Shown piece after piece: positions 4,633 to 42,002 of a DNA stretch of 51,810 bases (the stretch's first letter is position 1; every line of letters starts with the position of its first letter). Position numbers and translations under genes: made by a program. Location: assembly GCA_002269645.1 (NCBI GenBank), contig NIVC01003011.1:1-51810 (forward strand), read 5' to 3'. Origin of the DNA: Macrostomum lignano. Its lineage: Eukaryota. The notes beneath the pieces were generated by a model. The model searched no databases, was not told the origin of the DNA, and was given only the letters and a program-made list of their open reading frames with translations.

Positions 4633-10307
<5,675 letters not shown>

Positions 10308-10442
10308 CAATTGTTTTAATAACCTCTGAAGTCGCAACTTGTGTCAATGTTCAGCAGTAAAAAATGATTTTTAAAAATATCTAACACTAGTATTTTATAG
10401 CTTTGCCTGGGTTCTGAAGTATTGTACCCTTTTGTTCTATGG

Positions 10443-12119: not shown

Positions 12120-12555
<436 letters not shown>

Positions 12556-12657: not shown

Positions 12658-15600
12658 CTACCACAGGCTGGTTAGCACTGAAGCTACCAAAATAAATTCA
12701 GCCAGAGCCAGCAGTGCCCAGCACCAAACCATACTACTTTCAGCACTAGGCTTTGTAGCCGTTAAATACTCGTCAGAGCTCCAGCGACCATTTAGCCATC
12801 CGTTGTTGATGAAGCGCGCAGCCTCCGGCCAGGCGTGTCGCCCTACCAGACGATACTGAGCGGGCAGGCAGGGCTGACACCAGCATCGGAGCGCCAGGCC
12901 CAGCGATCGGTGCTGCAGCAGCAGCGACAGCAGGCGCGGTCTGCAGCCAATTTCGTCGGCAAGCATGTCCATGACGTCGAGCCAGTGAGTCTGAAATTAA
13001 TGAGTTGCGCAAATATTTAACGGATGCTGCTCGGGTTCGATGACCACATTCATTTTGGGGCTTGTGCGCTCGAAAATGGGCTAGCAGGTGAGCTGTCGAG
13101 CAATTCACAGCCACGAGGCCCAACCCCCAAGGCACAAGGTGTACATGTCTAACGATTACAAGGTCAAAGGGCCGCTGTACACACCCTGTCTGAGCATCTG
13201 TATGAGTGCGTACCTGCGTACAGTATTGTATTGTATGTGCTCAGGGGTCAGCGCAATGGGAAGGAACTGTCTCAGCGGGCAATGTGTGTAGAATGGGACC
13301 CCTCAGAAGCGCACAGGCTCATCAACAGGAACGCAACAGTTGGTTGCAGTTTCACCTCCATAGCGTGTCTATCTGTCCGACGAAACTTGACCCGAATTCG
13401 ACGCTTTCTTTCGACGATTTCGGCGTCTCTTTTTTCAGTGCCAGGCAGGAGGTGGTGAAGGTCATCAACTTGACGTTCAGCGAACACCTTGGCGGCCCAT
13501 CTGGCTTGGGCTTCCAGTACCGGGAAGAATGCTCCAACCACCTGTGTTTTGGAGAGGCAGGTGTATTTACAGTCAATTGGTTGCGTACAGCATGTGGAAT
13601 CTTAAATACTTCGTAGCCAACTGTTTTGCACAACTAGATTGACCATTACCTGCAAGAGTCCAACTGCAGCGAACGTGTTGTACTCCCGATGGAAGGTGAA
13701 CTTGTATAGACCTGCCCAACCGTCTGGCTCGATTTCAAGCAGTTCCTTCGATACGAAAGGCAGAGTCGGTCGATAGCCGGTGGCGAAAATCACTGCGTCC
13801 ACCGAGGCGCTGCTGCCGTCAGCAAACTCAGCGCGACCGTCGGAAGTGAACCGTGTCAGGCCCGGCTTCACAGACACGAATCCGTCAGCTATGCGGTACT
13901 GCAGCTGGTCGTGAATTGTTGGATGCGTCGAGAGCACACTGCGGAGCGGTTGAGGGTCGAGCATGCAGACTCCGTGCTTCCATGCGTTATTTTTTGTCCT
14001 CCTGACTATAAGACTCTCAAGACGCTTGAAACTCTCCTGCCTCTTGTGACTCTCCTGCCTCTTGTGACTTTCCTGCCTCTTGTGACTCTCCTGCCTCTTG
14101 TGACTCTCCTGCCTCTTGTGACTCTCCTGCCTCTTGTGACTCTCCTGCCTCTTGTGACTCTCCTGCCTCTTGTGACTCTCCTGCCTCTTGTGACTCTCCT
14201 GCCTCTTGTGACTCTCCTGCCTCTTGTGACTCTCCTGCCTCTTGTGACTCTCTTGCCTCTTGTGACTCTCCTGACTCTTGTGACTCTCCTGCCTCTTGTG
14301 ACTCTCCTGACTCTTGTGACTCTCTTTACTCTTGTGACTGTTATGACTCTTGTGACTCTCTTTACTCTTGTGACTCTCCTGACTCTTGTGACTCTCCTGC
14401 CTCTTGTGACTCTCCTGCCTCTTGTGACTCTCTTTACTCTTGTGACTGTTATGACTCTTGTGACTCTCTTTACTCTTGTGACTCTCCTGACTCTTGTGAC
14501 TCTCCTGCCTCTTGTGACTCTCTTTACTCTTGTGACTCTCTTTACTCTTGTGACTCTCTTTACTCTTGTGACTCTCTTTACTCTTGTGACTCTCCTGCCT
14601 CTTGTGACTCTCCTGCCTCTTGTGACTCTCTATACTCTTGTGACTGTTATGACACTTGTGACTCTCCTGTCTCTCGTGACTCTTCTGTGACCCTTTTCAT
14701 TCTTGTAACTTGCCTGACTCCAATGACCCTAAACCATTTTTAGGCTAACTGATTCTTAAAACACTCTCAACTTTTATACTGTACTCGTATAGACTATTTT
14801 GACGTTTCTGAGTACCCTATCAACGCACCTATACTCAGGCCTAAGTCCCAGATGTTGATGGCAGTGCTTGAAGTTAGCAAACGCCCTGACGGCGCACTCC
14901 AGAGCCCAGTCGGGCAGCAGCAGCCTCCCTAGTCTAGTGGTAGCCAGCGCGTCCATCGGCCAACCGAACGGGCCGGTCTTGCCGACGATCCATGACCCGC
15001 CGCCTCGACAGCTGAGCATGACTGAACGGCAGTGCCAACTAAGTTCGCAGGCGATATCGGCGCCCGAGTTTCCTAAGCCGACAACCAGGACTCTCTTGTT
15101 GGCAAATCGCTGATAATCGACGTAGCTGCTTGAGTGACAGATGTCGCCAGTGAAATTGGCAATACCTGACGGCCTCGGACAGTTGGCCTGCCAGTGATGT
15201 CCGGTGCAGATCAATACGGCGCCGAATTTGCGTCGTACAGACAGCTGCTCCGTTCTACCGTCAGCTGTGACGTTGCTGCGATGTCAAAGCAGAAAGATAA
15301 ACGATATTAAAGCCTAGGACAGGGGTCGGTCAACTTTTCTTACTTCAAGGGCCTAGCGCATGACTGCGGGTCTGTTGGAGAGAATAGAGGGAATCGAGAG
15401 GATAAATAGGAGAAAGGAGAGGCCAAGGAATAAAGGAGAAAAAATGAGACGATAGGAGAGGAGAGAGGAGGGGAAGATGAAATAGAAGAGGAGAAAGGAG
15501 AGAGGAGAGGAGAGAAGAGAAGGAGAGGAGAGAGGAGAAGGAGAGAGGAGGGAAGGGAGAAGGGAGAGGAAAAGGGAGAGGAGAGGAGAGGAGAGGAGAG

Positions 15601-18588
15601 GAGAGAGGAGAGGAGAGGAGAGGAGAGGAGAGAGGAGAGGAGAAGAGAGGAGAGAGGAGAGGAGAGGAGAGGAGAGAGGAGAGGAGAGGAGAGGAGAGGA
15701 GAGAGGAGAAGGAGAGAGGAGGGAAAGGAGGAGAAGGGAGAGGAAAGGGGAGAGGAGAGGAGAGGAGAGGAGAGAGGAGAGGAGAGGAGAGGAGAGGAGA
15801 GGAGAGAGGAGAGGAGAGGAGAGGAGAGAGGAGAGGAGAGGAGAAGAGAGGAGAGAGGAGAGGAGAGGAGAGGAGAGAGGAGAGGAGAGGAGAGGAGAGG
15901 AGAGAGGAGAAGGAGAGAGGAGGGAAAGGAGGAGAAGGGAGAGGAAAGGGGAGAGGAGAGGAGAGGAGAGGAGAGAGGAGAGGAGAGGAGAGGAGAGGAG
16001 AGGAGAGGAAAGGAGCGGAGAGGAGAGGAGAGGAGAGGAGAGGGGGAGATGAAATAGAAGAGGAGAAAGGAGAGAGGAGAGGAGAGAGGAGAAGGAGAGA
16101 GGAGGGAAGGGAGGAGAAGGGAGAGGAAAGGGGAGAGGAGAGGAGAGGAGAGGAGAGGAGAGGAGAGGAGAGGAGAGGAGAGGAGAGGAGAGGAGAGGAG
16201 AGGAGAGGAGAGGAGAGGAGAGGAGAGGAAAGGAGCGGAGAGGAGAGGAGAGGAGAGGAGAGGAGAGGAGAGGAGAGGGGGAGATGAAATAGAAGAGGAG
16301 AAAGGAGAGAGGAGAGGAGAGAGGAGAAGGAGAGAGGAGGGAAGGGAGGAGAAGGGAGAGGAAAGGGGAGAGGAGAGGAGAGGAGAGGAGAGGAGAGGAG
16401 AGGAGAGGAGAGGAGAGGAGAGGAAAGGAGAGGAAAGGAGAGGAGAGGAGAGGAGAGGAGAGGAGAGGAGAGGTGAGGAGAGAGGAGAGGAGAGGAGAGG
16501 AGAGGAGAGGTGAGGAGATTAGATGAGAAGAGAGAGGTGAGAGAAGAGAACTGATAAGGGACATAAACCTTGAGCGGACGGATTGCTATTGTGAAGCTTC
16601 AATTAGGACCCGCGGGCAGCAGTTTGCTGACTGCTGGCCTAGCATGACGGCAATTTACTCTCGTAAAAAAGTCACGAGGTTCGATCGCTCTCGCGGGCAC
16701 ACGTTGTTCTGCAGTTTATGTTTCGGAAAGCCTCAGACAAGTCGCGCGTGCGATTCACGAAGGCTAACACGAAGGTTACAAAGGCTAACACCTAAAGACT
16801 TCAAGGTGTACACTGCCTGAAAATGAGGGAGAAAGCCCGGGCCCCCTGTACACCCTGTGGTAGCGTGCTCAGCAGTCAGCGGAATTGGTACAACTGCTTG
16901 TTACTTTGTTGGTTTGCCCTTGGTCTGCTCAAATCTGACACTTTGAGTTGCTAGTTGACTCACCGCTGATTAACCTCAACAATCCATCGCGTGTTGACAT
17001 CCGTTGGAAGTTCGGGTTGCACAGACAACACCTTGGCGCCGAAGATGATGCGGCTGGTCAGCTGGAACTGCTCAGCGTACAGGCGCAGGTACAGCAGCAC
17101 CCAGCGGTTGTGCATGAAGGTTGGCGCACCCGCTGGTACAGGGAAATCGCTGAAACACGACATCTGCTTGCTGCTGATCATGGTGCAGCTAGAGTAGACG
17201 GATGCGTTTGATGTCGGATTTTTCGTGTTCCAGATTCCGCCTGATATTAATATTGATGTATGATTTGATGAAGCGCATGAAACAATTACCATAAAAGCTA
17301 TTTACATTAAAAGTAAACATAAGATATCATGCCTGACTTAAAACACCACCTACACTTTTCAAACAAGGAATGCTTAAGGAGGCTGCATTGTATTAAGCAT
17401 GCTCTAAAGAGCACAGACTCTACATTCTCTAGATTTGTCTCTCCAGAATTCGCTAATGTGTTGAGCGGCCTTCTCCGAGGCCACGAATTCCCCGGGACAG
17501 GGGCGTCGCCATGGATTTTATCGTGGGTGGGACAAAGCCAAGAATTCCACATATACATGTACAGGACTAAATTCCTACATGTACATTATTGTAAGAATCA
17601 GTGTTGTCAGCGCTCATTTTGGCGCCGCAGGCACTCATTTTGTCGCCGCAGGCACTCATTTTAGCGCCGCAGGCACTCATTTTGTCACCGCAGGCACTCA
17701 TTTTGTCGCCGCAGGCACTCATTTTAGCGCCGCAGGCACTCATTTTGTCACCGCAGGCACTCATTTTGTCGCCGCAGGCACTCATTTTAGCGCCGCAGGC
17801 ACTCATTTTAGCGCCGCAGGCACTCATTTTAGCGCCGCAGGCACTCATTTTAGCGCCGCAGGCACTCATTTTGTCGCCGCAGGCACTCATTTTAGCGCCA
17901 CAGGCACTCATTTTGTCGCCGCAGGCACTCATTTTAGCGCCGCAGGCACTCATTTTGTCGCCGCAGGCACTCATTTTGTCGCCGCAGGCACTCATTTTAG
18001 CGCCACAGGCACTCATTTTGTCGCCGCAGGCACTCATTTTAGCGCCGCAGGCACTCATTTTGTCGCCGCAGGCACTCATTTTAGCGCCACAGGCACTCAT
18101 TTTAGCGCCGCAGGCACTCATTTTGTCGCCGCAGGCACTCATTTTAGCGCCGCAGGCACTCATTTTAGCGCCGCAGGCACTCATTTTAGCGCCGCAGGCA
18201 CTATATTTTGTCGCCCTGAAGCAAAATTATTGATTTCCATAACGGGTCACAAGGCGGGGTGGGGGGGGGTACAAAGGACAAAGGAGGGGACAAAGGGGAC
18301 AAAGGATTGGCATGTCCCACCCTGTCCCCCCGGTGGCGACGCCCCTGCCTCGGGGTTAGGGCCACAGACACTTAAGAGCAGCAGAAGCTACAGTCTATGG
18401 TCTCAACCCCGGTGTTTTGGGCTTTAGCCATGCAGCTGAAGTGAACCAGTGAACGCATGATGCAAACTGATCTTACCAATATCGTCGCTAAGCTCAAAGC
18501 AGACACAATCGAGGCCCTCTTCTAAGCAGCTTTTGATGCTCGCCAAGCCGCTGGGACCTGCTCCGATTATGCAGACACATTTGCTCAT
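12658..18588 (-). CDS. FMO: Flavin-containing monooxygenase, ~547 aa, 6 exons
   Basis: Exons 18588-18477, 17240-16964, 15275-14829, 13938-13650, 13541-13356 and 12990-12658, all GT-AG and phase-consistent (1,2,2,0,0), 1644 nt in total. FAD motif IGAGPSG, FMO motif [16 protein letters not shown] motif VVGLGNSG, then FATGY, EAQARW and a hydrophobic C-terminal anchor. Confidence 0.95.
14020..14690. repeat. 18-bp minisatellite (CTCTTGTGACTCTCCTGC), ~36 copies; FMO intron 3
   Basis: Direct inspection; variant units cluster toward the 3' end. Confidence 0.96.
15320..16636 (+). mobile_element. hAT-type MITE family B inflated by a ~1.15-kb (GAGAG)n-like tract; FMO intron 2
   Basis: Left TIR CAGGGGTCGGTCAACT, degenerate right TIR AGTTTGCTGACTGCTG, TSD GCCTAGGA / GCCTAGCA (7/8), same internal landmarks as 10443-10856. 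Confidence 0.85.
17498..18347 (+). mobile_element. hAT-type MITE family A containing ~28 copies of a 21-bp unit; FMO intron 1
   Basis: Perfect 14-bp TIRs CAGGGGCGTCGCCA (17498-17511) / TGGCGACGCCCCTG (18334-18347). Flanks CCCCGGGA / CCTCGGGG (6/8). Unit GCAGGCACTCATTTTAGCGCC. Confidence 0.9.
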
Positions 18589-20023: not shown

Positions 20024-20900
20024 CGCCATGTCACCATGGATTTTATGACGGGGGGACAAAGCCCTCAATTCAACATGTACATGACTAAATTCCTACCTGT
20101 CCATTATTTTGAGAATCTGTGTTGTCAGCGCTCATTTTAGCGCAGCAGGCACTCATTTTAGCGCCGCAGGCACTCGTTTTGGCGCCGCAGACACTCATTC
20201 TGGCGCCGTAGGCACTCACTTTGGCGCCGCACGCACTCATTTTAGCGCCACAGGCACTCATTTTAGCGCCACAGGCACCCACTTTTAGCGCCACAGGCAC
20301 TCATTTTAGCGCCACAGGCACTCATTTTAGCGCCGCAGGCACTCATTTTAGCGCTACAGGCACTCATTTTGGCACCGCAGGCACTCATTTTAGCGCCGCA
20401 GGCACTCATTTTAGCGCCACAGGTACTCATTTTAGCGCCGCAATCACTCATTTTAGCGCCGCAGGCACTCATTTTAGCGCCACAGGCACTCATTTTAGCG
20501 CCACAGGCACTCATTTTGGCGCCGCAGGCACTCATTTTAGCGCCACAGGCACTCATTCTAGCGCCGCAGGCACTCATTTTAGCGCCGCAGGCACTCATTT
20601 TAGCGCCGCAGGCACTCATTTTAGCGCCACAGGCACTCATTTTAGCGCCACAGGCACTCATTCTAGCGCCGCAGGCACTCATTTTAGCGCCACAGGCACT
20701 CATTTTAGCGCCGCAGGCACTCATTTTAGCGCCACAGGCACTCATTCTAGCGCCGCAGGCACTCATTTTAGCGCCGCAGGCACTCATTTTAGCGCCGCAG
20801 GCACTCATTTTAGCGCCGCAGGCACTCATTTTGGCGCCCTCAAGAAAAAAATTTTTGATTTCCACAACGCGTCGCAAGGTGGGGTGGTGGGACAAAGCAT
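20024..20900 (+). mobile_element. MITE family A copy with degraded termini and ~33 copies of the 21-bp unit
   Basis: CATGGATTTTAT..GGGACAAAGCC left arm and TTGATTTCC..AAC right arm match 17498-18347. Confidence 0.85.
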
Positions 20901-22620: not shown

Positions 22621-23098
22621 TGCAAATCATCTTTTCTACTATATTCAGCAACCGTTTGTTCACCCCGAGCTCGATTTCATTCATTTGGTCGAATGGGAAC
22701 TTGGGAACTCGTGTACGAAAACTGGACTGGGATTTTTTGCGATTTGCGTTCTACACACTGCCTGACAGAGATGTCGAGAGAGTCAGGGCCGCTGTTACAC
22801 CCTGCTCAGACCGTTCAGGTGTCAGTGGAAATAAATCCTAACAAATCCAATGGTCAATAAATCATAAATCAATGTTAGATACAATCAGGTATATGATTAC
22901 TTAGTCTCAACTTATTCCGACTAATTCGATCATTAAATTGCAATATGTTTGTTTAGCCGTGAGACTGGGTGCAGACAGCTGATTGGCTGCAGTCCCAACT
23001 GGATTTGATGCTCATTTAAAAATAACTCAAATCCAATAAAATTCCCCAGGTGAAATATTTGCTTGTCTTCAACGAAACGAACTATCAGCGAAATTAAA

Positions 23099-23425
23099 AT
23101 GAGCAGCAGAATCACGGCGATAATCCTGCTTGCCGCCATCCTGACAGTAATTGGCCCAACGGACACCGTCGCCCGCTTCCCCCTAGGGAACTCCATAAAT
23201 ATCGGCAATTCTAATCAGTCTCAATCTGAACGCGTGTTAACTGTTATCGCATCAGTTTTTGGAGGATTGCTGCTCTGCATAATGGCTATCACTTTGCCGA
23301 TCTGCGTAGCAAGGATGTCGCACCGCTGCTGCTGTTGCTGCTGCTGCTTCAGCAGGCAAAGCGCACCTGCGTCTCAGCAGATCAGGCACAACCCTATGGT
23401 TCCAATGGCTGAGCTGGGCGTGTAG
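23099..23425 (+). CDS. Small single-pass Cys-rich membrane protein, paralog 1 (108 aa)
   Basis: ATG at 23099, hydrophobic leader, TM segment, CCCCCCC, C-terminus PMVPMAELGV. The paralog at 27148 shares start context and C-terminus. Confidence 0.75.
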   Translation: MSSRITAIILLAAILTVIGPTDTVARFPLGNSINIGNSNQSQSERVLTVIASVFGGLLLCIMAITLPICVARMSHRCCCCCCCFSRQSAPASQQIRHNPMVPMAELGV

Positions 23426-24899
23426 CTAAAAACAAACAGACTGCAGTCTCTGCGCGAGCGGCAGCGCCAACTAAACTTTTTATGTTTCTTTTAACAAATT
23501 GAGACTCGAGTTAAATTTAAAATACAATGAGCAAAATTGTTTGGAGTGGGCTTAAACTAGTGAACTCTGTCTTAACAATGCAATGACTTTCTGAGCTATT
23601 TAAGCGTATTAATGTGTCCATAATTTCTTTCATTGTGATCAGTACTAAAAGCGTTTATTTGATTGACTAGCACTAACATCTCATCGCGATTGATTTGAAG
23701 GATTGCCTGGATCAATGTTCGGTACTAAATAATGTGCCTTGATTGAGTCACCCTGTGGTTAATATAATGCCTTCCGAGTCACTATGGTAATTCGCACAGT
23801 ATTTAATATGAAAAAGATTCGATAATATTATAATTGGAATTAATCGAAAATTGTCAAATAATCAATTTGACAATAGTAAACTCCACTTACGCCAAAAAAG
23901 CTCGTATAATTGTCCGCTGATTTTTCGGTAAGGGGCTTGTCTATGGCCACACTCAAGTATCACTGGACCATTATCTGGAAAATGGGCTTGCTGTCAGGAC
24001 CATTATATAGATAATGGGCTTGTGGGCATATATAATGCAATAGTCCATAAGAAACGTACAGCAAAAGTGTCTTCAGGAAGGCAAACATATTTAATAGCTC
24101 ATATAAAAAAGCAAATAATCAAGATAATAGCAAATAACAGCTTGATTAATTAGCTTCAACCAAGTTTCATCGAACTTTTTACTACAATCACTTGAAAAAC
24201 ACCATAACCCTCTCACCGACAATCTTCACCTTGTCGACAGAACGTTTTTTCTCAGCAGGTGGTACGGTATCCTGGACCTGTCGATCCAAGAGGTTCAACG
24301 CGAACGTCAATCTGTTGAGAGCTGGAGGCAACCAGAGACAAAACAGTTCAAGGGATAGTGCCATCACTGAGGAGTCTCAGCCATAAGTCGAGCCTGGGAA
24401 CGAGATGCCTTTATATGTCGTCCAGATGTCGTTGTAAATCTTCAGCTGTCAGTATTATTATCAAGCAGTCTCGTAGGTGTGTCATCGTTATTGACTCTTG
24501 TCGCATCTTGAGGCTGGCTCCATATCCATAAATAATTGGTCGCACGAAAAATCGATTTCGTCAAGATCGACGTAGATTATATATGATTCAGTGGTAGATT
24601 ATGTAGTATGTTATGGCCATTATTTAACTCCGTAACATACTATATTATTGCATTGTATATATAGCATACTACGAGCTAGTAGCCAATTATAATCAGTTTA
24701 TCTTAGTTAAGCAATGACAATTTTTGTCATTGCTTAACTCTGCCTACAAGATCGGTCATTACTTAATGCTACTAAAATTAGGCACCAAGTCGATCATAGA
24801 CAAACTTGAAGGCCTTGGTGCAGTGCGCCATAGACAAAAATTTAGGCCTTGACGCGACTGAAAAGTGCCATTCCAGTATCTGTTACAAAAAGCGATAGA

Positions 24900-25360
24900 C
24901 TGGAAAGAAAATTTACAGCAACAAAATACCAATTTCACTTAGTCAACAACTTAGCAGTTTCTACCGATCGAGGAAGCAGATCTGGAAAAAGTCAAGGCGT
25001 ACTTTGATAGAACCACAGCCGAAACGCTTACAGGACGAGGTGGTATTCGCCATTCTCTATATTCTACGTGAGAGAGGACAAGAACACCTTAAACATTTGA
25101 AACAGCAGGGAGCATTGGTTGCTGGTACCGACTCCGACAGACAAGAGTACTGTGAACTACCACCACTACCAACAAAGAACCAATCGAGTGACCCAGACAA
25201 GTGCAAAGACGACAGAACGAAGCAGGCGCGCATCTACGGAGAGCATCGTCAACTGACTGCTCTGTATGAGAGGTCTTTACCTACATGGGTGAAAAACGGC
25301 TGCTTTTTTCCGAAGCCTCTTTTGAACGATTCAGAAGACAGGTTCCGTTTTTGTACGATT
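24900..25360 (+). pseudogene. Crypton-type tyrosine-recombinase (DUF3504-like) fragment
   Basis: PIEEADLEKVKAYFD, a frameshift near 25030, then LQDEVVFAIL..RERGQEHLKHL, D.QEY, TKN, RIY, LYERSLP and FFPKP match the Crypton/ZMYM recombinase pattern. The catalytic C-terminal part is not seen. Confidence 0.7.
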
Positions 25361-25629
25361 CAGGCACGCGGAGTTTTTTGTTTATTGTTTGTGTATGGTT
25401 TCAACTTCACTTGTTATGTAATAAATAATTTGAAAATAAATTGTCTATGGTCGAAATGTATTTTCAGCGTTAAGCAATAACAAAATGGTGCGTGTCATTA
25501 TAATACTCTTGCGTATATGTACAATGGTCATCGGCTTGCTTAACTCGCCTCGAGACCATTAAATGCGACCTCAGACTTTCTGACCACAGAATGCGCATTA
25601 TAAAGCTATTATCTTATACATAATCTACT

Positions 25630-26820
25630 GCTAAGATGTCAATTCTGCTGGGGGAAATTGCTGAGATGTCAAAGTTTATGGGGGTAAATAGCTGAGATGT
25701 CAAGGCTTACGGGAGGTGCTGGAATTTCAATTCTGACGAGGGAAATTGCTGAGATGTCAAGGCTTACAGGGGGAATTGCTCAGATGTCAAGGCTTACAGG
25801 GAAAATTGCTGAGATGTCAAGGCTTACAGGGGGAATTGCTGAGATGTCAAGGCTTACAGATGGAATTGCTGAGATGTCAAGGCTTACAGATGGAATTGCT
25901 GAGATGTCAAGGCTTACAGGGGGAATTGCTCAGATGTCAAGGCTTACAGGGAAAATTGCTGAGATGTCAAGGCTTACAGGGGGAATTGCTGAGATGTCAA
26001 CAAGGCTTACAGGGAGAGTTGCTGAGATGTCAAGGCTTACAGGGAGAGTTGCTGAGATGTCAAGGCTTACAGGGGGGGAATTGCTGAGATGTCAAGGCTT
26101 ACAGGGAGAGTTGCTGAGATGTCAAAGCTTACAGGGGGGGAATTGCTGAGATGTCAAGGCTTACAGGGAGAGTTGCTGAGATGTCAAAGCTTACAGGGGG
26201 GGGAATCGCTGAGATGTCAAGGCTTACAGGGAGAGTTGCTGAGATGTCAAAGCTTACAGGGGGGGGGAATTGCTGAGATGTCAAGGCTTACAGGGAGAGT
26301 TGCTGAGATGTCAAGGCTTACAGGGGGAATTGCTGAGATGTCAAGGCTTACAGATGGAATTGCTGAGATGTCAAGGCTTACAGATGGAATTGCTGAGATG
26401 TCAAGGCTTACAGGGGGAATTGCTCAGATGTCAAGGCTTACAGGGAAAATTGCTGAGATGTCAAGGCTTACAGGGGGAATTGCTGAGATGTCAACAAGGC
26501 TTACAGGGAGAGTTGCTGAGATGTCAAGGCTTACAGGGAGAGTTGCTGAGATGTCAAGGCTTACAGGGGGGGAATTGCTGAGATGTCAAGGCTTACAGGG
26601 AGAGTTGCTGAGATGTCAAAGCTTACAGGGGGGGGAATTGCTGAGATGTCAAGGCTTACAGGGAGAGTTGCTGAGATGTCAAAGCTTACAGGGGGGGGGG
26701 AATCGCTGAGATGTCAAGGCTTACAGGGAGAGTTGCTGAGATGTCAAAGCTTACAGGGGGGGGGAATTGCTGAGATGTCAAGGCTTACAGGGAGAGTTGC
26801 TGAGATGTCAAGGCTGTGAG
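25630..26820 (+). repeat. 30-bp minisatellite (GGAATTGCTGAGATGTCAAGGCTTACAGGG), ~38 copies, family D
   Basis: Period ~30 with a variable G-run. Higher-order duplication is visible (AACAAGG variant at ~25998 and ~26493). Confidence 0.96.
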
Positions 26821-27147
26821 GTAAGCATGCAGCTGCAGAAATAGTTTACTCAAAAAAATTTATTACTTTTTTGTTGGCTCCCTATTGGGAGGGGGCGCTG
26901 GTTACTAGTATGAGTTTATAGATATTGACGTAGGTATAGATATAGATATAGATCCTAACGATAGATATTGCTAATCAAACGGCAATAAAGCATCTCCATT
27001 CGGCTGGCAATGAGTACAGGTGCTCATGGTGCCTCCTGCTGATTGGCTGTGCGATCTACCATCAATTATGCTATAGAGCTGCGAAATTTCTCGAGGCCAA
27101 ATCTTCCAATTGTCACCAATAGAGCACAAATTACCAGCGAAATTGAA

Positions 27148-27483
27148 ATGAGCAACAGAATCCCAGAGATAAGAGCCGTAATCCTGCTGACCGCCATCCT
27201 GACGGTTGGCTCAGAAAAGACTTTCGTCAGTGTTCTGCCGCCGATTAAAATCGACACACCTCAGAGCGCCGAAGCGGAGCAGCGTTTTTATGTCAACATA
27301 TTAATTGCAGTTGCAATTATTCTTGGACTGCTTGGCTTCTACATTTTGGCTACCTACCTGCTAACCTGCTGCTGCTGCAGGCAAAGCAGCTCTGAGGCAA
27401 GGAGAAACCGACAGAACGGTGTGGTTATCAATAAAAACGATTGGACTGTTCCCATGGTTCCAATGGCTGAGCTGGGTGTGTGA
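27148..27483 (+). CDS. Small single-pass Cys-rich membrane protein, paralog 2 (111 aa)
   Basis: ATG at 27148, leader AVILLTAILTV similar to paralog 1 AIILLAAILTV, TM, CCCC, C-terminus VPMVPMAELGV. Confidence 0.75.
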   Translation: MSNRIPEIRAVILLTAILTVGSEKTFVSVLPPIKIDTPQSAEAEQRFYVNILIAVAIILGLLGFYILATYLLTCCCCRQSSSEARRNRQNGVVINKNDWTVPMVPMAELGV

Positions 27484-27810
27484 CGTGCGGCCAGCGTCAG
27501 CTTAGAGTTCGCTATATATTTTATCAATTCTTAGTGACTACGTGTTGAACTAAGGTTTTAAAAAGTAAATACACCGAGCACTGCTGCAACTACAGTACAG
27601 CTATAGATGCACTCTTAAACAAAGCATGATCCTGTCTGAGCTCCGTCGGAAATTTAGAGTATGAGTCAACCTTTTTTGTGCTTATTATAACTAGCTGGCG
27701 TTCAAATGAATGACATTACCCCGGTATATACACGTATGTTGTATTGTAGGATATGTACTTTTCATTAGCAAGTCAACAAGTTCAATAGTATTTATATGTA
27801 AATGTCTCTT

Positions 27811-27922
27811 TTTGGGGCTCCCCTGTCTCTTGATTGGCGCCCCTGTCTCTTAATTGGCGCCCGGCCTTGTCTCTGGATTGGCGCCCCAGCTACCCCATAT
27901 CTTTTAGGCCGGTGGATGCTAC
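27811..27922 (-). repeat. Family C element with only ~3 units of the 20-bp seed
   Basis: Reverse complement GTAGCATCCACCGGCCT...AAGAGACAGGGGCGCC matches the head and unit of 5861-7110. Confidence 0.8.
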
Positions 27923-28956
27923 TTCTACTACATGTAGGTGTCAAAATTTGAGCTCACGTGTCATTCGCTTACCAATCTTATTTAGTTTCTAGCACGGACT
28001 ACTTCAGTAGAAGGACGCGACACGGGCAAAGCGTGCAAATTTTATTGGAGGCTGAATATTCAATTTTATGTAGTCCGACTTCAGAAACACCGAAGTATAG
28101 TTTTTTCACAGGATGCACATTACTTGTCCTTGTTGATGTGAGATATGTAATGTATGATTAAAACGATGCAGAAACCTTAGAAATTAGTTTCAAGCGACGA
28201 GAACTAGCTTTTGTCTGGTGAGTTTCGAAGTGCGACAACTATATGGCATAAATATGGCTCTTCACTTTGATAGTTATAGCACCTACTTTAAACGATGCTT
28301 CAGTACACGCCGTTCATTGTAACCGTGCAGCAAACCTTTAATCTGGGCGTACGAAAAACCTATTGCAGACGTACAGGTATAAATACCACCGGTTCTGTGC
28401 CCATCGCATCGGATAAATAGAATCAAAAGACGAAATAAGACAAAAGATTTTGAGAATAAGAATCTTAAGTTTTAAGTTTATAAGTAAGTTAAGGCCTACA
28501 AATGTTACAATGATTAGGGCTTACAATTGTTAAAATAATCTAAAAATTAGAAAACTGGTGCCTAATTGTGTGCCACTAGTGTGCCTTATGCATTGTATAG
28601 TTATAAACTATATGGGTTGAAGAGTAAAGGTTTTGCTTGTTTCATTGTACTTCTGTACTATTACTCATCATTTGCCTAGCTAATTTACCTGTCCCCCTCC
28701 GCGCCTCACGCCACCTTTTCTCACCGCCTCCATATTGATTTGTTATAACGTACATTGCAAGTCATGCACACTTACAACCCCCCCCCCCGCTAAAGCCTGT
28801 GTCAACCCCGCCATATATTATATTGAGAATAAATATACCTAGCTCAAGAGTAGACTGCGCGGACCCTTTTGATTTTGTTCTTCTACGATTGTCAATTGCG
28901 AGGCGAGCCGCCAAGTGCTGTGTTCTCAGTTCTTAAGAATCTCTTGTTAACATTTT

Positions 28957-28974
28957 TGGTAGCAGAGCGTGGTT
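28957..28974 (+). promoter_or_regulatory. Primer-binding site complementary to initiator tRNA-Met
   Basis: TGGTAGCAGAGCGTGGTT, 4 nt after the 5' LTR, matches the reverse complement of the animal tRNAi-Met 3' end (...CUCUGCUACCA). Confidence 0.8.
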
Positions 28975-28981
28975 CAGGTAA

Positions 28982-31132
28982 ATGGCCAGCCACGAATCGA
29001 ATCAGCAGCAGACTGGCTGCTCAGAAGATGAAGAAGAAAAAGAGATCAGCACTGAGGAGCGGCTTCGCATCGAACAGTTTCGACGAGTGAAGGCAAGAAC
29101 GAAGTCTGCAGGAACTAGGAGTCGAAACCGTCTGGTACTGTTGCTACAGAGCGACACCGATCATGAAGCGATCCAGCAAGCGTGCGATGCAGCCACTGCA
29201 GCACACGAAGAGTGCGTGAAGCTGCTTGACGAATTCTATGATGAGCTCCTTCAGCAAGAAGCCACAGAAGAAGCTCGAGACAAACTTCTGGACGAGCTGG
29301 ATCAAGTGGAGCAGCAGTTTCAAGACACTGTGAAATGTGTCACTCAATTCATCACTGCTCATCAGACTGCCGTGACAGCTGCGCCTGCGGCGACTGCCGT
29401 GACAGCTGCGCCTGCGGCGACTGCCGCGACTGCCGCGACTGCGGCTACGGCCATGCCGGTTGTGAGTGCCAGTAGTATTGATGACTCTGTAAGTGAGGCG
29501 GGCCATTCTCAGACTAGCAGCGGTGAAGCCGAGTTAGCAAAGGATCTTTGGAAGATGCTTCGGCGTGTAGAGATCCCAAAGTTCGGCGGCGAAAAGCAGC
29601 AGTACGAATCTTGGAAAGCCGCCTTTACTGCTTGTATTGATAGAGCTCCTGCCACGCCGGAGTTCAAATTGCTTCAACTCCGTCAATATCTTCAAGGGCC
29701 GGCTTTGAAATTAGTCGAACATCTGGGTCACTCTGCCGCTGCTTACGAGGCTGCCAAAGACAGATTGGAACGCGAATTCGGGGGCAGCCGCCGACGTATC
29801 GCTCTGTATCTTGAAGAGCTCGATAACTTTCCACCCATCCGCTCCACCAATGCAAAAGAGCTTAAGCAATTCTCTAATCTGTTAGATGTCGCAGTTGTAA
29901 ATCTCGAAGAGTCTGGTAAGGTCTCAGAATTGACTGACGGGTTGTTGTACGCAAAGTTGCAGAAGAAGCTCCCTGAGCAGATGGTGGCGCGTTACCGGCG
30001 TTGGCTATTCGAAGGACATAGGCAAGAGAGCGTTAAGATGTTACGTGAGTGGGTGCTTATAGAAGCCGCTTTCCAGACAGAAGCCATGGAGATTGTGCAC
30101 GGTGTGACGAGTGAAGAGAAGGTTAAGAAGGAGACGCGGTCCAAAACGTTTCTTGCAGATCATCAACAAGCGTCTCCGTCAAAATCTTGTATGCTGTGTC
30201 AAGATCAACATGAGCTGTGGAAGTGTCCAACATTTAGACAGCTGTCAATTGAAAATCGGTGGAAGGCTGCGCAAGATTCGAAATCATGCTTTTACTGCTT
30301 AGCTCGCAGTCATGCTGCTCGGATATGCCGTCATGGACGCCGATGTGGAATCGGTGAATGCAACAAGTTTCACCACCGCTTGCTGCACTCTGACGAGGCT
30401 GCAAAAACTGAGTCGAAGAAGAATTCTCCGGCCGAAGGAGGCAAAAAGAAGGCTGAGTCGGGTCGCAAAGGAGCCGCCGTAACTATGATGGCAGGAAATG
30501 GAAGTGCAACGTCGCTGCGAACAGTTCCAGTAGTTCTCAAGGCAGGTGGCCGTGTAGTGAAGGTGAACGCACTGTTGGACGACGCGAGTACAAGGACGTA
30601 TGTGAATGCAGAAATTGCTGAAGCTCTGGGACTGGAGGGCAATGTGGAGCGAGTGAAAGTGAACGTTTTGAACGGACAGACAGAGACATTGTTGACAGCT
30701 CCGGTTACGATGACGCTCGAAAGTGTAGATGGAAGTCTGAGTCGTCCGATCACGGCATTCACGACAGACAGCGTCACCGGGAAGCTGAAGGCCACGGATT
30801 GGCAGACGACAGCAGTGGATTGGAAACATCTGGAGCGTATTCCATTTCCTCAGCTCCATGCGCCGCATCTCATAGACCTGTTGATAGGAGTGGATCATGC
30901 GGAGTTACATGTGTCCTACCGAGAAGTTCGCGGTGGCCCTGGGGAGCCACAGGCACGTTTGACTCCCCTTGGATGGACAGGTGTGGGTCCAGTAGAACAG
31001 ATTCAGCATCAGACAAACTTGGCCAGCACCTTTTTCTGTCACCAGCGAGGAGATGCTGTCACCAGTGCTGCGCAAGTTCTGGGAGGTCGAAGAAATCCGG
31101 CCAGCTCAAGATCAAAATTGGACAGCGGATGA
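28982..31132 (+). CDS. BEL/Pao Gag-protease ORF (716 aa)
   Basis: DUF1759-like EIPKFGG..YESWKAAF, three Cys/His knuckles (CMLCQDQHELWKC, CFYCLARSHAARIC, CGIGECNKFHHRLLH), aspartic protease ALLDDAS. Confidence 0.9.
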   Translation: MASHESNQQQTGCSEDEEEKEISTEERLRIEQFRRVKARTKSAGTRSRNRLVLLLQSDTDHEAIQQACDAATAAHEECVKLLDEFYDELLQQEATEEARDKLLDELDQVEQQFQDTVKCVTQFITAHQTAVTAAPAATAVTAAPAATAATAATAATAMPVVSASSIDDSVSEAGHSQTSSGEAELAKDLWKMLRRVEIPKFGGEKQQYESWKAAFTACIDRAPATPEFKLLQLRQYLQGPALKLVEHLGHSAAAYEAAKDRLEREFGGSRRRIALYLEELDNFPPIRSTNAKELKQFSNLLDVAVVNLEESGKVSELTDGLLYAKLQKKLPEQMVARYRRWLFEGHRQESVKMLREWVLIEAAFQTEAMEIVHGVTSEEKVKKETRSKTFLADHQQASPSKSCMLCQDQHELWKCPTFRQLSIENRWKAAQDSKSCFYCLARSHAARICRHGRRCGIGECNKFHHRLLHSDEAAKTESKKNSPAEGGKKKAESGRKGAAVTMMAGNGSATSLRTVPVVLKAGGRVVKVNALLDDASTRTYVNAEIAEALGLEGNVERVKVNVLNGQTETLLTAPVTMTLESVDGSLSRPITAFTTDSVTGKLKATDWQTTAVDWKHLERIPFPQLHAPHLIDLLIGVDHAELHVSYREVRGGPGEPQARLTPLGWTGVGPVEQIQHQTNLASTFFCHQRGDAVTSAAQVLGGRRNPASSRSKLDSG

Positions 31133-32399
31133 GCAAGCTGTAGTCGAGCAAGCCAAGTCTTCATTAAAGCTAACAAACGGCCGATACCAGATGGGAATTC
31201 CGTGGAAGCCAGAGGCGAAAGTTCGCTCGAATAACTATGAGATGGCGATCATACAGCTTTGTAACACGGAGACTCGGTTGAAGAAGGATCTGGAGGTGGC
31301 AAAGCAATACCAAGCATGCCTAGAGCGATATGGGCAACAAGGCTACATTCGGCACGTTGCAGTAGAGGGGTTCACAGCCAGGTGTTTTCTGCCGCATTTT
31401 TTGATTATTCGATTCGACAAGCTGACGACAAAGGTTCGAATCGTCTTCGATGCCTCGGCGGGCGGGAACGAAAAGTCGTTAAACTCTCTGGTCTTCCCAG
31501 GGCCGAAGCTTCAGCGAGAATTGTTTGACGTTCTGCTTCGCTTCAGGAGAGATGCAGTGGCTGTGGCTTGTGACATCTCCGAGATGTACCTCCAGATCGA
31601 AATGGCGCCGGAGGACAGGCCGACGCATAGCTTTATATGCCGTGAGATGGACTCTAGCAAGCCTGTTGAAATTTTTGAGACCAAACGCATCGTTTTCGGA
31701 AACTCGAGCTCGCCGTTTCTTGCTCAGTTCGTAGTTCGTGAGCATGCGGAACGCCTGAAAGAAGAGCTGCCATTAGCTGCAGACGCTGTTCTCAACTCCA
31801 CCTATATGGACGATTGTTTAGATTCGGTCGGGTCAGAGGCTGAGGCGATCCAGCTGTTTCAAGAGTTGAAGACTCGCTGGGAGCGTGCAGGCATGGAATT
31901 GTTGAGCAGAGTGCCACTAGAAGATCGAGTAGCCGAAGTAACATTGGAAGGGACACCGATGCCATCCATAAAGACGCTTGGTGTAGAATGGAGAAGCGAT
32001 CGGAACAAGTGCACCTTTAAAGTCGACCAGCCGTTTGCTGCGAACCGCATCAGAGAGACCAAGTCTGTCACAGATCCGGACCAGTGGAGGTGTGCCAATG
32101 CTTTGTCTCGAGGAACTTCAGCGAAGCAGCTGACGGAGGTTGACAGCTGGTGGCATGGACAAAGGGTGACTGGTCGGAGCACAGTCGTTAGCATGAATGA
32201 GGAACGATCGGCGGTCAGACGATTAGACCCGACCATGGCGACCAGGTTCTCGAGCTCAAAGCGGCGCATCTGCATGCAAGGCGAGACAGCTCGATTCGCG
32301 ACCATCTGCTGGCTGCCGCGGAGAGACGGGTGCGAGTTGCAAAAGTGCAGCTGGTTGGCAAGGCCTCCGCGAGGCCAACTGCGAGGCTGCGTCCGCTAA
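31053..32399 (+). pseudogene. BEL/Pao reverse transcriptase, frameshifted and deleted
   Basis: LRKFWEVEE, FLPHF, KVRIVFDAS, DISEMYLQI, FGNSSSPF and YMDD, then abrupt jumps to RNase H-terminal remnants. No integrase motifs. Confidence 0.9.
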
Positions 32400-33777
32400 T
32401 CACGAAGGGAGGCTTTAGAACTGACTAGTTGAGGTTTTGGCCGAACTTTCTTTTGTGGCTTTTGAGAGCTTTGCTTCCCTGCGCATTAAATCCAGTTTGG
32501 TTCGATCGCATTGTGTTTTTTCACTTCTGCTGTCTATTTTTGGGAGTTTTTGTGTTTGTTTTTTGTGTCTCTTTTTTTGTTTGTTTTCTTTTTTTGTGTT
32601 TTTTGTGTTTTTTTGTGTTTTTTGCTTGTTTGGCGTTTGTTGCGAAGAGGTTTTGCATACTCTGTTCGGTTAGCTTTCCCATTTTTCAGCGTTTATCCCC
32701 TTTGCTCATTTCATCGCACTGTACGCTACATTTCAGGTTCAATCCCGTTTGCTAATTCAGTTCGAATATTTATCGCATCCCCGTGATTCGTTTACTAACC
32801 TAATTATTTGATCCTATTTTCACTTTGTCATTTTGTCGAGCGTATTGCATCCTAGCGATTTAACTTTTTTCCTGAAAAGTACGCGGTACTATAATAATTG
32901 AATGTTTTAATTTTAAGATCTTTGTTCGAGGTGCTCTTTGTTTTGTTGGCATGTGCTCATGCCAAGAAGGGAGGTATGGATTGAAGAGTAAAGGTTTTGC
33001 TTGTTTCATTGTACTTCTGTACTGTTACTCATCATTTGCCTAGCTAATTTACCTGCCCCCCTCCGCGCCTCACGCCACCTTTTCTCACCGCCTCCATATT
33101 GATTTGTTATAACGTACATTGCAAGTCATGCACACTTACAACCCCCCCCCCCGCTAAAGCCTGTGTCAACCCCGCCATATATTATATTGAGAATAAATAT
33201 ACCTAGCTCAAGAGTAGACTGCGCGGACCCTTTTGATTTTGTTCTTCTACGATTGTCAATTGCGAGGCGAGCCGCCAAGTGCTGTGTTCTCAGTTCTTAA
33301 GAATCTCTTGTTAACACTATAAATCTTGTAACATTAGAGGTAGAATACCTCTTTACCTCGCTGGGCAAGCTAGAATATCTTAGTCTAACTCTAAGTCTAG
33401 CTAGAGTATAGTATTGTTGTTTATTAGGTATCCAATTTAATTAAAAATAAAGTTTCTAAAATATACTTCCTTGAACTCAAAACAATGCAATAATACATAC
33501 TATCCATGGGCATAGTCAATAGGCCCTAGATAAGATAAAAGTCGGAAGTCTTGCATAGTCAGCCAGGCGTTAAATCTTTAAAGCAACTGAGCTACTTGGT
33601 AGCAAGAATTTGCTTTTACACTTGACATGATTTAGCTTACAGTCAGTTTTTTCGGCAATCTAGTTTTACCGCGATAATTTTTTTAAAAACTTTAATTGCG
33701 AGTTAGTTACGCGGTCTACATGCATAATATGTAAAATAGCTAGGGCTTATATAAATATTATACAGTAAGCTAGGGCC

Positions 33778-36800: not shown

Positions 36801-37490
36801 TCAGTTGCTAGGCCAGCCTCCCTGATCCTCAGTTGCTGGGCCAACATCCCAGATCCCCAGTGCTGAGCCAGCCTCCCAGATCCTCAGTTGCTGGGCCAGC
36901 GAGATCCTCAGTTGCTAGGCCAGCCTCCCTGATCCTCAGTTGCTGGGCCAGCATCCCAGATCCCCAGTTGCTAGGCCAGCCTCCCAGATCCTCAGCTGTT
37001 TGTTGGGCCAGCCTCCCAGATCCTCAGTTGCTGAGCCAGCCTCCCAGATCCTCAGTTGCTGGGCCAGCATCCCAGATCCCCAGTTGCTAGGCCAGCCTCC
37101 CAGATCCTCAGCTGTTTGTTGGGCCAGCCTCCCAGATCCTCAGTTGCTGAGCCAGCCTCCCAGATCCTCAGTTGCTGGGCCAGCATCCCAGATCCCCAGT
37201 TGCTGAGCCAGCCTCCCAGATCCTCAGTTGCTGGGCCAGCCTCCCAGATCCTCAGTTGCTGGGCCAGCCTCCCAGATCCTCAGTTGCTGAGCCAGCCTCC
37301 CAGATCCTCAGTTGCTGGGCCAGCCTCCCAGATCCTCAGTTGCTGAGCCAGCCTCCCAGATCCTCAGTTGCTGGGCCAGCATCCCAGATCCCCAGTTGCT
37401 GAGCCAGCCTCCCAGATCCTCAGCTGTTGGGCCAGCCTCTCAGATCCTCAGTTGCTGGTCCAGCCTCTCAGATCCTCAGTTGCTGTGCCA
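36795..37490. repeat. 28-bp minisatellite (CCCAGATCCTCAGTTGCTGGGCCAGCCT), ~24 copies
   Basis: Direct inspection; ends ~70 bp upstream of the MYEF2-like acceptor. Confidence 0.95.
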
Positions 37491-37570
37491 GCCTCCCTAA
37501 ATCCCCAATTCAAGGCGTCAATGCTGAACGCCCGCAGCAATCCTATTGCCTATCGCTAACGCCGCAGAGA

Positions 37571-40500: not shown

Positions 40501-42002
40501 TGCTAAACAATCAGATGCTTTACAATAGGCCCATGCGAGTTAGAATGGACCTGCCGGAGGGTGAACGGCCCGATGGTAAGCACCGTGGAGGCAGCAGCGG
40601 CCTGCCTGAAGGTCTTGGCGGCGTTGGAGCGGCACTGGATCAGGCCACGGCTCGGGAGCTGCAGGGCATGCTTGGCGGAGGTACGTAACTTCATTTTTCA
40701 TGTGCGATTTTAACTGTAGATATCAGATTTGTCAGGCTCAAGCTAGGGGGTCAGGAGTGGTTCTCAAGCTAAGGGTCAGGAGTGATTCTCAAGCTAAGGG
40801 TCAGGAGTGATTCTCAAGCTAAGGGTCAGGATTGATTCTCAGTCGGTTAGGAGTGATTCTCAAGCTAAGGGTCAGGAGTGATTCTCAAGCTAAGGGTCAG
40901 GAGTGATTCTCAAGCTAAGGATCAGGAGTGATTCTCAAGCTAAGGGTCAGGATTGATTCTCAAGCTAAGGGTCAGGAGTGATTCTCAAGCTAAGGGTCAG
41001 GATTGATTCTCAGTCGGTTAGGAGTGATTCTCAAGCTAAGGGTCAGGATTGATTCTCAGTCGGTTAGGAGTGATTCTCAAGCTAAGGGTTAGGAGTGATT
41101 CTCAAGCTAAGGGTCAGGATTGATTCTCAGTCGGTTAGGAGTGATTCTCAAGCTAAGGGTCAGGAGTGATTCTCAAGCTAAGGGTCAGGAGTGATTCTCA
41201 AGCTAAGGGTCAGGATTGATTCTCAAGCTAAGGGTCAGGAGTGATTCTCAAGCTAAGGGTCAGGAGTGAATCTCAAGCTAAGGGTCAGGAGTGATTCTCA
41301 AGCTAAGGGTCAGGAGTGATTCTCAAGCTAAGGGTCAGGAGTGATTCTCAAGCTAAGGGTCAGGATTGATTCTCAGTCGGTTAGGAGTGATTCTCAAGCT
41401 AAGGGTCAGGAGTGATTCTCAAACTGAGGGTCGGGAGTGATTCTCAAACTAAGGGTCAGAAGTGATTCTCAGGCGGTCGGGAGTGAATCTCAAGCTAAGG
41501 GTCAGGAGTGAATCTCAAGCTAAGGGTCAGGAGTGATTACCAGGTGCCGGATATAATGGTAGTCTTTTAGTGCAATGATGCTTTAAGTTCATAACAATAC
41601 CTAATATAGTATCGCAGTGAGTCATATAGTTTTGTGAAATCTGGATGGCATTAAATCGTTAATCAATCGATGCACTCGCTGTGCCGTCTGGTGACATCAG
41701 CAGATGGTCGTCATCGCAGAGGCGGAGGAGGCGGCGTAGGAGGAGGCGGCGGAGGCGGAGGCGGAAGCACGGACACAGTGTTTGTTAGCAATCTGCCTTA
41801 TAGCTACGATTGGAGCAGTCTTAAAAAGGCGTTCCGCGGCGTTGGCGGAGTTCGATTTGCCGATGTTGACATTGGGCCGGACAAGCGCAGTCTGGGCACC
41901 GGCCACGTGCAGTTCAGCAGCTCGTCGGATGCTCGCAGAGCCGTGTCGATGATGGACGGCGTTAAAATTGAAGGCCGATCTATTCGTGTAGCGCTGCGAT
42001 GA
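37571..42002 (+). CDS. MYEF2: MYEF2/hnRNP M-like three-RRM RNA-binding protein with an N-terminal RS domain, ~425 aa, 4 exons
   Basis: Exons 37571-37957, 38946-39205, 40352-40680 and 41701-42002, GT-AG and phase-consistent (0,2,1). The RRM2 region VFVSNL..VNWQKLKDVFRLAG..EAAQAISMLNNQMLYNRPMRVRMD..LPEGLGGVG matches MYEF2/hnRNP M. Confidence 0.9.
38018..38895. repeat. 21-bp minisatellite (TGACTGTCTATAGTGCCAATC), ~41 copies; MYEF2 intron 1
   Basis: Direct inspection. Confidence 0.97.
39290..40250 (+). repeat. 30-bp minisatellite (GAGAGTCACTCCTGATCCGCCATCCTCACT), ~31 copies; MYEF2 intron 2
   Basis: Direct inspection; homogeneous core at 39760-40020. Confidence 0.96.
40745..41540 (+). repeat. 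25-bp minisatellite (TCAGGAGTGATTCTCAAGCTAAGGG), ~32 copies; MYEF2 intron 3
   Basis: Direct inspection; the 15-nt core is the reverse complement of the intron 2 core. Confidence 0.96.

Follow-up and report, generated by a model that had tools for sequence, protein, structure and literature searches.

Within the 51,810-nucleotide (nt) stretch of contig NIVC01003011.1 analyzed here (the window), two small genes, A and B, lie in tandem and encode membrane proteins that end in the same ten residues, PMVPMAELGV. The observation of this gene pair was confirmed, and the resemblance between the copies is far beyond chance. Their paralogy, the preservation of their reading frame, purifying selection on the signal, Cys-RQS and tail segments, a two-helix architecture and the lack of known relatives are regarded as established. 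With moderate confidence, we consider the pair best explained as tandem, single-exon, lineage-restricted genes for small palmitoylated type I single-pass proteins with a C-terminal motif.

Gene A occupies positions 23099–23425 of the forward strand (108 amino acids [aa], stop codon TAG) and encodes seven consecutive Cys residues, and gene B occupies positions 27148–27483 of the same strand (111 aa, stop codon TGA) and encodes four. The copies are 4 kb apart, both consist of a single exon, and BLASTP established their paralogy with E = 8e-13 at 34% identity. The product of gene A is composed of a predicted signal peptide (MSSRITAIILLAAILTVIGPTDTVA, aa 1–25), an ectodomain (RFPLGNSINIGNSNQSQSER, aa 26–45), a predicted transmembrane (TM) segment (VLTVIASVFGGLLLCIMAITLPICVA, aa 46–71, encoded at 23234–23311), the stretch RMSHRCCCCCCCFSRQSAPASQQIRHN and the tail (aa 99–108, 23393–23422); the Cys run is at aa 77–83 (23327–23347) and an RQS triplet at aa 86–88. 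Likewise, the product of gene B displays a predicted signal peptide (MSNRIPEIRAVILLTAILTVGS, aa 1–22), an ectodomain (EKTFVSVLPPIKIDTPQSAEAEQRFYVN, aa 23–50), a predicted TM segment (ILIAVAIILGLLGFYILATYLLT, aa 51–73, 27298–27366), the stretch CCCCRQSSSEARRNRQNGVVINKNDWTV and the tail (aa 102–111, 27451–27480), with the Cys run at aa 74–77 (27367–27378) and RQS at aa 78–80. An earlier note on this DNA had described two intronless paralogues of 108 and 111 aa with Cys runs of seven and four, and both the open reading frames (ORFs) and the BLASTP result agree with it; the leader, short ectodomain, TM segment and juxtamembrane Cys run that it assigned to both proteins were borne out by the sequence and by hydropathy. 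The identity of the two tails, which it had also claimed, holds, except that the shared tail comprises ten residues instead of nine. A third copy was not found within the window by motif scan, tblastn or blastn.

Similarity between the copies at the DNA level was located by local alignment against shuffles and with a repeat finder, revealing four short conserved blocks: (i) a CCAAT/NF-Y-like box, (ii) the end of the 5' untranslated region (UTR) with the start codon and the signal peptide, (iii) the Cys run with RQS, and (iv) PMVPMAELGV with the stop codon. The first block is located at 22968–22989 in gene A, as found by the repeat finder, motif scan and local alignment, and at 27028–27049 in gene B, as found by the first two of these. 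It contains an inverted CCAAT box, GCTGATTGGCTG, which has just two occurrences in the window, at 22978 (121 nt before the ATG of A) and at 27038 (110 nt before that of B), and whose reverse complement, CAGCCAATCAGC, we take to be an NF-Y-type CCAAT box. The start block spans –22 to about +59; it covers 23077–23148 in gene A (the 5'UTR end ACGAACTATCAGCGAAATTAAA, the ATG at 23099 and the n- and h-regions of the signal peptide) and 27126–27206 in gene B (ACAAATTACCAGCGAAATTGAA, the ATG at 27148 and the signal peptide). Within it, CAGCGAAATT(A/G)AAATGAGCA is present in the window only at 23086 and 27135, and CAGCGAAATTRAAATGAGCA is unique to the A and B sites. The upstream CCAAT box and the start-site motif had been reported before as shared by the two genes, and each was indeed found at only two window sites, ahead of A and B. 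The Cys run and R-Q-S are encoded by CTGCTGCTGCT...GCAGGCAAAGC, which is similar in both copies, and the tail block is identical at 29 of its 31 nt, with a 23-nt core that occurs only at the A and B sites in the window (0 expected in shuffles). The TM-coding stretches could be aligned with z = 4.4.

Downstream of the coding regions, homologous 3'UTR stretches were localized to 23455–23667 (A) and 27484–27714 (B), both on the forward strand; about 230 nt are alignable, with 72% identity in aligned columns, 48 gap columns, a p-distance of 0.28 and a Jukes-Cantor distance of 0.35. Since no similarity was detectable farther upstream of the CCAAT-box blocks, the duplicated unit is estimated at about 0.75 kb, and the divergence indicates an old duplication, with neutral divergence of roughly 0.35–0.5 substitutions per site. 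A transposon origin of this unit was considered and rejected, as the unit is without terminal repeats and without further copies in the window. The DNA between genes A and B contains a 30-bp minisatellite (GGGGGAATTGCTGAGATGTCAAGGCTTACA, about 38 copies) at 25651–26815, in which a 494-bp higher-order unit is present twice at 99% identity and which gives rise to long spurious ORFs.

The position of the CCAAT box, approximately 100–120 nt before the ATGs, suggests a promoter element, and gene A also has TTTAAAAATAA at 23015–23025. Past the stop codons, the hexamer AATACA is conserved at a distance of 96 nt in A (23521) and 85 nt in B (27568), and may be a variant poly(A) signal. Another account of the upstream region, possible rather than probable in our view, is that CAG/CGAAATT (the solidus marking the splice point) is an acceptor for spliced leader (SL) trans-splicing, possibly of an operon, so that the CCAAT/TATA-like promoter would not be the sole driver of expression. 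Thirty percent of M. lignano genes are trans-spliced at the acceptor motif YTNCAG (PMC8629364), and the sequences ...TATCAG/CG and ...TACCAG/CG are kept 12 nt before the ATG of the two genes; furthermore, the single difference within the block leaves a stop codon, TAA in A and TGA in B, in frame with the ATG that terminates the SL. However, TATCAG and TACCAG are only near-matches to YTNCAG, position 2 being A, and trans-splicing is enriched in conserved and not in lineage-specific genes (PMC8629364). The conserved NF-Y-type box about 100 nt upstream is, moreover, what would be expected of genes with their own promoter. If the M. lignano SL, which ends in ...TTGCATG, were added at CAG/CG, a three-codon upstream ORF (M-R-N-stop; 23086–23101 and 27135–27150) would be opened and would end 1 nt ahead of the main ATG. 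Searches of the window for Rfam families, tRNAs and SL RNA gave no matches.

Several features of the alignment make it highly likely that A and B are real protein-coding genes. The conserved stretch opens 22 nt ahead of the first in-frame ATG, which the copies share, and terminates with the stop codon, which is TAG in A but TGA in B. The offsets of the anchor blocks between A and B are +9, –24 and +9 nt, corresponding to successive length changes of +9, –33 and +33, all multiples of 3, whereas the alignment of the adjacent 3'UTR contains indels of 1, 2, 6, 7 nt and so forth, with no such pattern. The proportions of non-synonymous (pN) and synonymous (pS) differences between A and B were derived from Nei-Gojobori counts. 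For the signal, Cys-RQS and tail segments together, pN was 0.10 and pS 0.35; the tail alone showed changes at 0 of 22.3 non-synonymous and 2 of 7.7 synonymous sites (CCT/CCC and GGC/GGT; pS 0.26). The corresponding pN and pS values were 0.43 and 0.54 for the TM segment and 0.54 and 0.74, that is, near random, for the ectodomain. These counts point to purifying selection on the signal, the Cys-RQS segment and the tail. At the 3'UTR divergence (p = 0.28), two or fewer differences within the 30 nt of the tail would have a probability of 0.004. Frame-preserving indels are thus found together with pN below pS between the paralogues, and the GC content at third codon positions (0.63 in A, 0.55 in B) is similar to that of the FMO and RRM exons in the window.

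We consider it improbable that the ORFs are untranslated and that the pair is instead a duplicated non-coding or regulatory segment, such as a long non-coding RNA or the remnant of a transposable element, with the conserved blocks acting as nucleotide-level elements. The absence of detected homologues and of expression support for A and B would agree with such an origin, as would a genome highly rich in repeats and a Cys run that is a trinucleotide repeat. Yet all three inter-block length changes preserve the frame, unlike the UTR indels next to them; one frame is open in both copies from the shared ATG to a stop at the equivalent place; synonymous change is in excess over non-synonymous change; the hydrophobic profile and helix pattern are kept despite sequence divergence; and neither terminal repeats nor other copies are present in the window.

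Hydropathy analysis revealed two hydrophobic peaks per protein, namely an h-region of 11–15 residues after a basic n-region, and then a TM segment of 23–26 residues, for which the 19-residue Kyte-Doolittle values were 2.6–2.7 in A and B. The h-regions are followed by G/P and small residues, with T-V-A/R in A and V-G-S/E in B at the predicted cleavage sites. AlphaFold, supplied with the two-sequence alignment, placed helices at residues 3–18 and 40–71, with predicted local distance difference test (pLDDT) values below 50 for residues 22–34, 69–99 and 106–108. The cytoplasmic part, about 37 aa without tyrosine in both proteins, looks disordered. It appears distinctly unlikely that the N-terminal segment stays uncleaved and that the proteins form a two-helix hairpin in which a loop of 20–28 aa is lumenal and both ends are cytosolic, a topology like that proposed for MAP17. 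Although AlphaFold models the N-terminal segment as a helix and the 19-residue hydropathy of residues 1–19 of A is 1.97, h-regions of only about 11–15 residues argue against the hairpin, as do the T-V-A/R and V-G-S/E sites, which with their G/P and small residues resemble, by eye, the usual signal-peptidase context.

The Cys run begins five residues after the TM segment in A, which ends at A71 and is followed by RMSHR, and immediately (0 residues) after it in B, where the segment ends at T73 and the run is followed by R. S-palmitoyl sites of TM proteins cluster a few residues from the cytoplasmic face, where adjacent Cys and basic residues favor modification (PMC11923826). This context is present in both A and B, as judged from their predicted topology: clustered Cys residues near the predicted cytoplasmic end of the TM segment, with basic neighbors. 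The codons of the run are TGC throughout, save for TGT at the third of the seven positions in A, and the four of B are all TGC; since the Cys string is encoded by a TGC run, the difference between seven and four is probably due to slippage of the repeat.

With respect to the tail, both differences within the 31-nt block are synonymous, and the tail pS of 0.26 is comparable to the 3'UTR divergence of 0.28 and the pS of 0.35 in the conserved blocks. Because the tail pS matches the 3'UTR divergence, recent gene conversion, which the earlier note had put forward as the test of its claim, is not needed to account for the identity of the tails. These data are suggestive rather than conclusive, given that they concern ten codons, of a tail that dates back as far as the rest of the duplicate and has been kept at the amino-acid level. 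Recent gene conversion over short tracts of the two copies, in place of protein-level selection, is very unlikely to have produced the tail and the other blocks, for while the copies are in tandem at a distance of 4 kb and the tail is identical at 29/31 nt, including six of eight degenerate third positions, both tail differences are synonymous, the pS of tail and blocks equals or exceeds the 3'UTR divergence, which would give the blocks the same age as the remainder of the duplicate, and four separate tracts of 12–60 nt, ending exactly at the stop codon, would be required.

Both proteins end in L-G-V followed by the stop codon and hence conform, at the level of pattern, to the Phi-x-Phi of class II PDZ ligands. 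The earlier proposal of such a ligand is therefore upheld as to the pattern, but a C-terminal valine fits endoplasmic reticulum (ER) export equally well: it is a known ER-export signal, found at the end of about 10% of type I proteins in humans, and the C-terminus of Cx36 doubles as ER-export signal and PDZ ligand (PMC11470877). From the sequence, we would assign roughly equal odds to the two functions. A larger interface than the minimal PDZ or valine motif is likely, because ten invariant residues exceed either of them.

The ectodomain presents a different picture. The DNA encoding it (75–108 nt) is unalignable between the copies (z = 0.1 by local alignment), whereas three consecutive 75-nt pieces of the 3'UTR gave z = 5.9, 4.6 and 2.3; the ectodomain thus seems to have diverged beyond the presumably neutral flanking DNA, which, coming from one pair and short segments, is only a lead. 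On the same grounds, the variable ectodomain of the earlier note can be retained tentatively, and the pattern hints at diversifying selection or rapid in-frame indel turnover. An ectodomain of 20–28 aa would offer no room for a fold, rendering the label of receptor doubtful, and that of a LAT/PAG-type adaptor is unsupported, considering that the cytoplasmic tail is without tyrosine. Of the lineage-specific receptor or adaptor family that had been envisaged, what stands is the apparent lineage restriction, with a PDZ adaptor as one of two comparable options. It is a rather remote prospect that A and B are founding members of a family, specific to Macrostomum or to flatworms, whose palmitoylated single-pass proteins have a diversifying ectodomain and all bind one conserved cytosolic partner via PMVPMAELGV. 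Macrostomum is a genus known for sexual conflict, and if this proposal were true, the diversifying ectodomain could reflect the recognition of partners, gametes or microbes.

Taken together, the favored explanation, that of small palmitoylated type I single-pass proteins, would operate as follows. A cleavable signal peptide would direct insertion into the ER, leaving an unstructured, fast-evolving ectodomain of 20–28 aa, followed by one TM helix and by about 37 aa in the cytoplasm. The Cys run, 0–5 residues past the TM segment and beside basic residues, would be S-palmitoylated and would anchor the beginning of the tail at the inner leaflet. Within the disordered tail, PMVPMAELGV-COOH would then serve as a short linear motif and bind one conserved cytosolic partner, perhaps a class II PDZ domain, perhaps the COPII/GRASP machinery by which C-terminal valines are recognized for ER export. 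Signal cleavage, palmitoylation and the partner, as well as expression and promoter use, are what we infer from the two sequences.

A number of points weigh against this explanation. The selection statistics come from two sequences and a few dozen codons, and Fisher's test for the placement of the two tail changes at synonymous versus non-synonymous sites gave p of about 0.06. Look-ups of the exact products of A and B returned no record. A Phi-x-Phi C-terminus is a low-information pattern and a weak indicator of function; the Cys run is a TGC microsatellite that could be tolerated instead of selected; and the signal peptide was assigned from visual inspection and hydropathy, and the N-terminal helix could stay as a second TM segment.

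To determine whether A and B belong to a known family, they were compared with several databases. All matches in an hmmscan of Pfam-A (E ≤ 10), among them PUNUT and Tweety, were spurious TM matches that fell below their cut-offs, and a word search with B among 5.8 billion clustered proteins gave no match. A HMMER profile of A and B retrieved no homologue from 1.84 billion representative proteins; its two compositional matches, a repetitive ORF and a protocadherin, were rejected, being aligned only via 'CCC-x-RQS'. The sole profile match among PDB sequences, the Cys cluster of NaPi-IIb (E = 0.18), was likewise rejected. In metagenome contigs, back-translated PMVPMAEL plus ILL[AT]AILTV yielded 147 pattern matches, none of which was confirmed, and the tail peptide was not found in a literature search. 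The designation of the family as unrecognized is thus in line with the outcome in Pfam, PDB, the 1.84 billion representatives and the metagenome contigs. The absence of homologues is solid for other taxa; annotation or further paralogues in Macrostomum fall outside its scope, because a search with an FMO exon of the window also found no identical protein, which indicates that the source proteome is incompletely covered.

The window is of animal origin and has the exons of a flavin-containing monooxygenase (FMO) gene on the reverse strand, a three-RRM gene on the forward strand and a BEL/Pao long terminal repeat (LTR) element. Minisatellites fill its introns and intergenic DNA. Tandem repeats make up 15% and LTR elements 21% of the M. 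lignano genome (PMC5730564), which the repeat load of the window fits, and the source is probably M. lignano or a very close relative. The FMO gene (13602–17292) has exons within ORFs 13602–13964 and 14774–15214 (Pfam FMO-like) and a third in ORF 16960–17292, taken as the FMO N-terminus by eye; its introns harbor an 18-bp array (14031–14687) and a GAGAG array (15446–16534). The three-RRM-domain gene (37427–42002) has exons within ORFs 37427–37999, 40353–40688 and 41670–42002, and introns filled with 21-, 30- and 25-bp minisatellites.

The BEL/Pao-type retrotransposon (28611–33274) is flanked by LTRs of at least 300 nt (28611–28910 and 32975–33274), and because these are 99% identical the insertion appears recent. 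An ORF for gag (DUF1759) and an aspartyl protease (28982–31132) and a reverse transcriptase ORF (31053–32399) were identified, whereas no ORF for integrase or RNase H was seen in this short element. An M. lignano UniRef protein named UDP-N-acetylglucosamine diphosphorylase contains a 121-aa stretch 98% identical to the gag (28982–31129), plus further pieces of the element, and is probably a chimeric gene model; the attribution of the window to M. lignano or a very close relative was drawn from this gag match. Other repeats include one 21-bp minisatellite (CTCATTTTAGCGCCGCAGGCA) in two arrays 2 kb apart (17613–18202 and 20131–20838), a 20-bp array of 61 copies (5886–7109) with a short related array in opposite orientation about 320 nt downstream of gene B (27803–27887), and very long tetranucleotide arrays, (ACTA) of about 327 copies and (AACT) of 109 copies, at 8404–9697 and 12120–12555. 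A perfect 16-nt palindrome (24705–24739) and an inverted-repeat pair (24722–24742/25465–25485) surround a 158-aa ORF (25004–25480) with no Pfam match, and the region 24705–25485 may represent a small non-autonomous transposon. A 207-aa ORF on the reverse strand (9714–10337), whose N-terminus is signal-like and whose C-terminal half is basic, also had no Pfam match.

If real, the gene pair would represent an unannotated lineage-restricted family with a sharply bounded C-terminal motif, and a compact case of mosaic constraint within a protein of 110 aa, in which the signal, lipidation site and tail are kept and the ectodomain and linker vary freely. In other respects, it is one more case of the many orphan small membrane proteins of any animal genome, addressing no long-standing question. 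M. lignano is a flatworm model in which transgenesis and RNA interference are available.

Comparison with known systems places A and B close to several groups of small membrane proteins. MAP17 (PDZK1IP1) and SMIM24 are small membrane proteins with a PDZ-binding C-terminus, and like A and B they are about 110 aa long, start with a hydrophobic leader, have a single TM segment after it and end in a short cytoplasmic tail, the last residues of which serve for docking, as is presumed for A and B; they differ in that no sequence similarity and no Pfam family-model match at E ≤ 10 link them to A and B. In addition, the MAP17 tail is of class I (S/T-x-Phi) as opposed to Phi-x-Phi, and MAP17 is without a Cys run. 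The FXYD proteins (phospholemman and others) resemble the pair in small size and type I topology, in having a signal peptide and a single TM segment after a short ectodomain, and in carrying a palmitoylatable juxtamembrane Cys next to basic residues, but the (P)FxYD motif is absent from A, B has RFYVN instead, and no Pfam match was obtained. LAT, PAG/Cbp, NTAL and LIME are palmitoylated transmembrane adaptors, of which PAG ends in a PDZ ligand. As in A and B, their ectodomain is very short, a single TM segment is present and cysteines are juxtamembrane, palmitoylated in the adaptors and predicted to be so in the pair; unlike A and B, with about 37 aa and no tyrosine, the adaptors have no signal peptide and possess long tails with many tyrosine motifs, and no sequence similarity to them was found.

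A cysteine run near the membrane is also found in protocadherins, NaPi-IIb (SLC34A2) and cysteine-string protein. However, the database matches through such runs, with E from 2e-6 to 0.18 over about 40 residues, are compositional and come with a different architecture, and in cysteine-string protein a J domain is present but a TM segment is not. Membership in the CYSTM (C-terminal Cys-rich TM module), Shisa (N-terminal Cys-rich ectodomain) or cysteine-string protein families is not indicated by any Pfam match of A or B, and they differ from CYSTM and Shisa in having ectodomains without Cys and a cytoplasmic Cys run with 25–34 further residues after it. Among known cargoes with class II PDZ ligands are syndecan (EFYA), neurexin (EYYV) and ephrin-B (YYKV). 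The cargoes proTGF-alpha, CD8, Cx36 and claudin-1 are exported from the ER by a C-terminal valine (PMC11470877, PMC4907727). The pair has in common with both sets that the extreme C-terminus of a membrane protein (Phi-x-Phi or -V-COOH) is a conserved docking element; the proteins are otherwise unrelated, the ten invariant residues of A and B exceed the minimal signal, and docking in A and B is suggested by pattern only. The architecture of A and B follows a familiar theme, that of MAP17, FXYD and the palmitoylated adaptors, but membership in each of these three groups fails.

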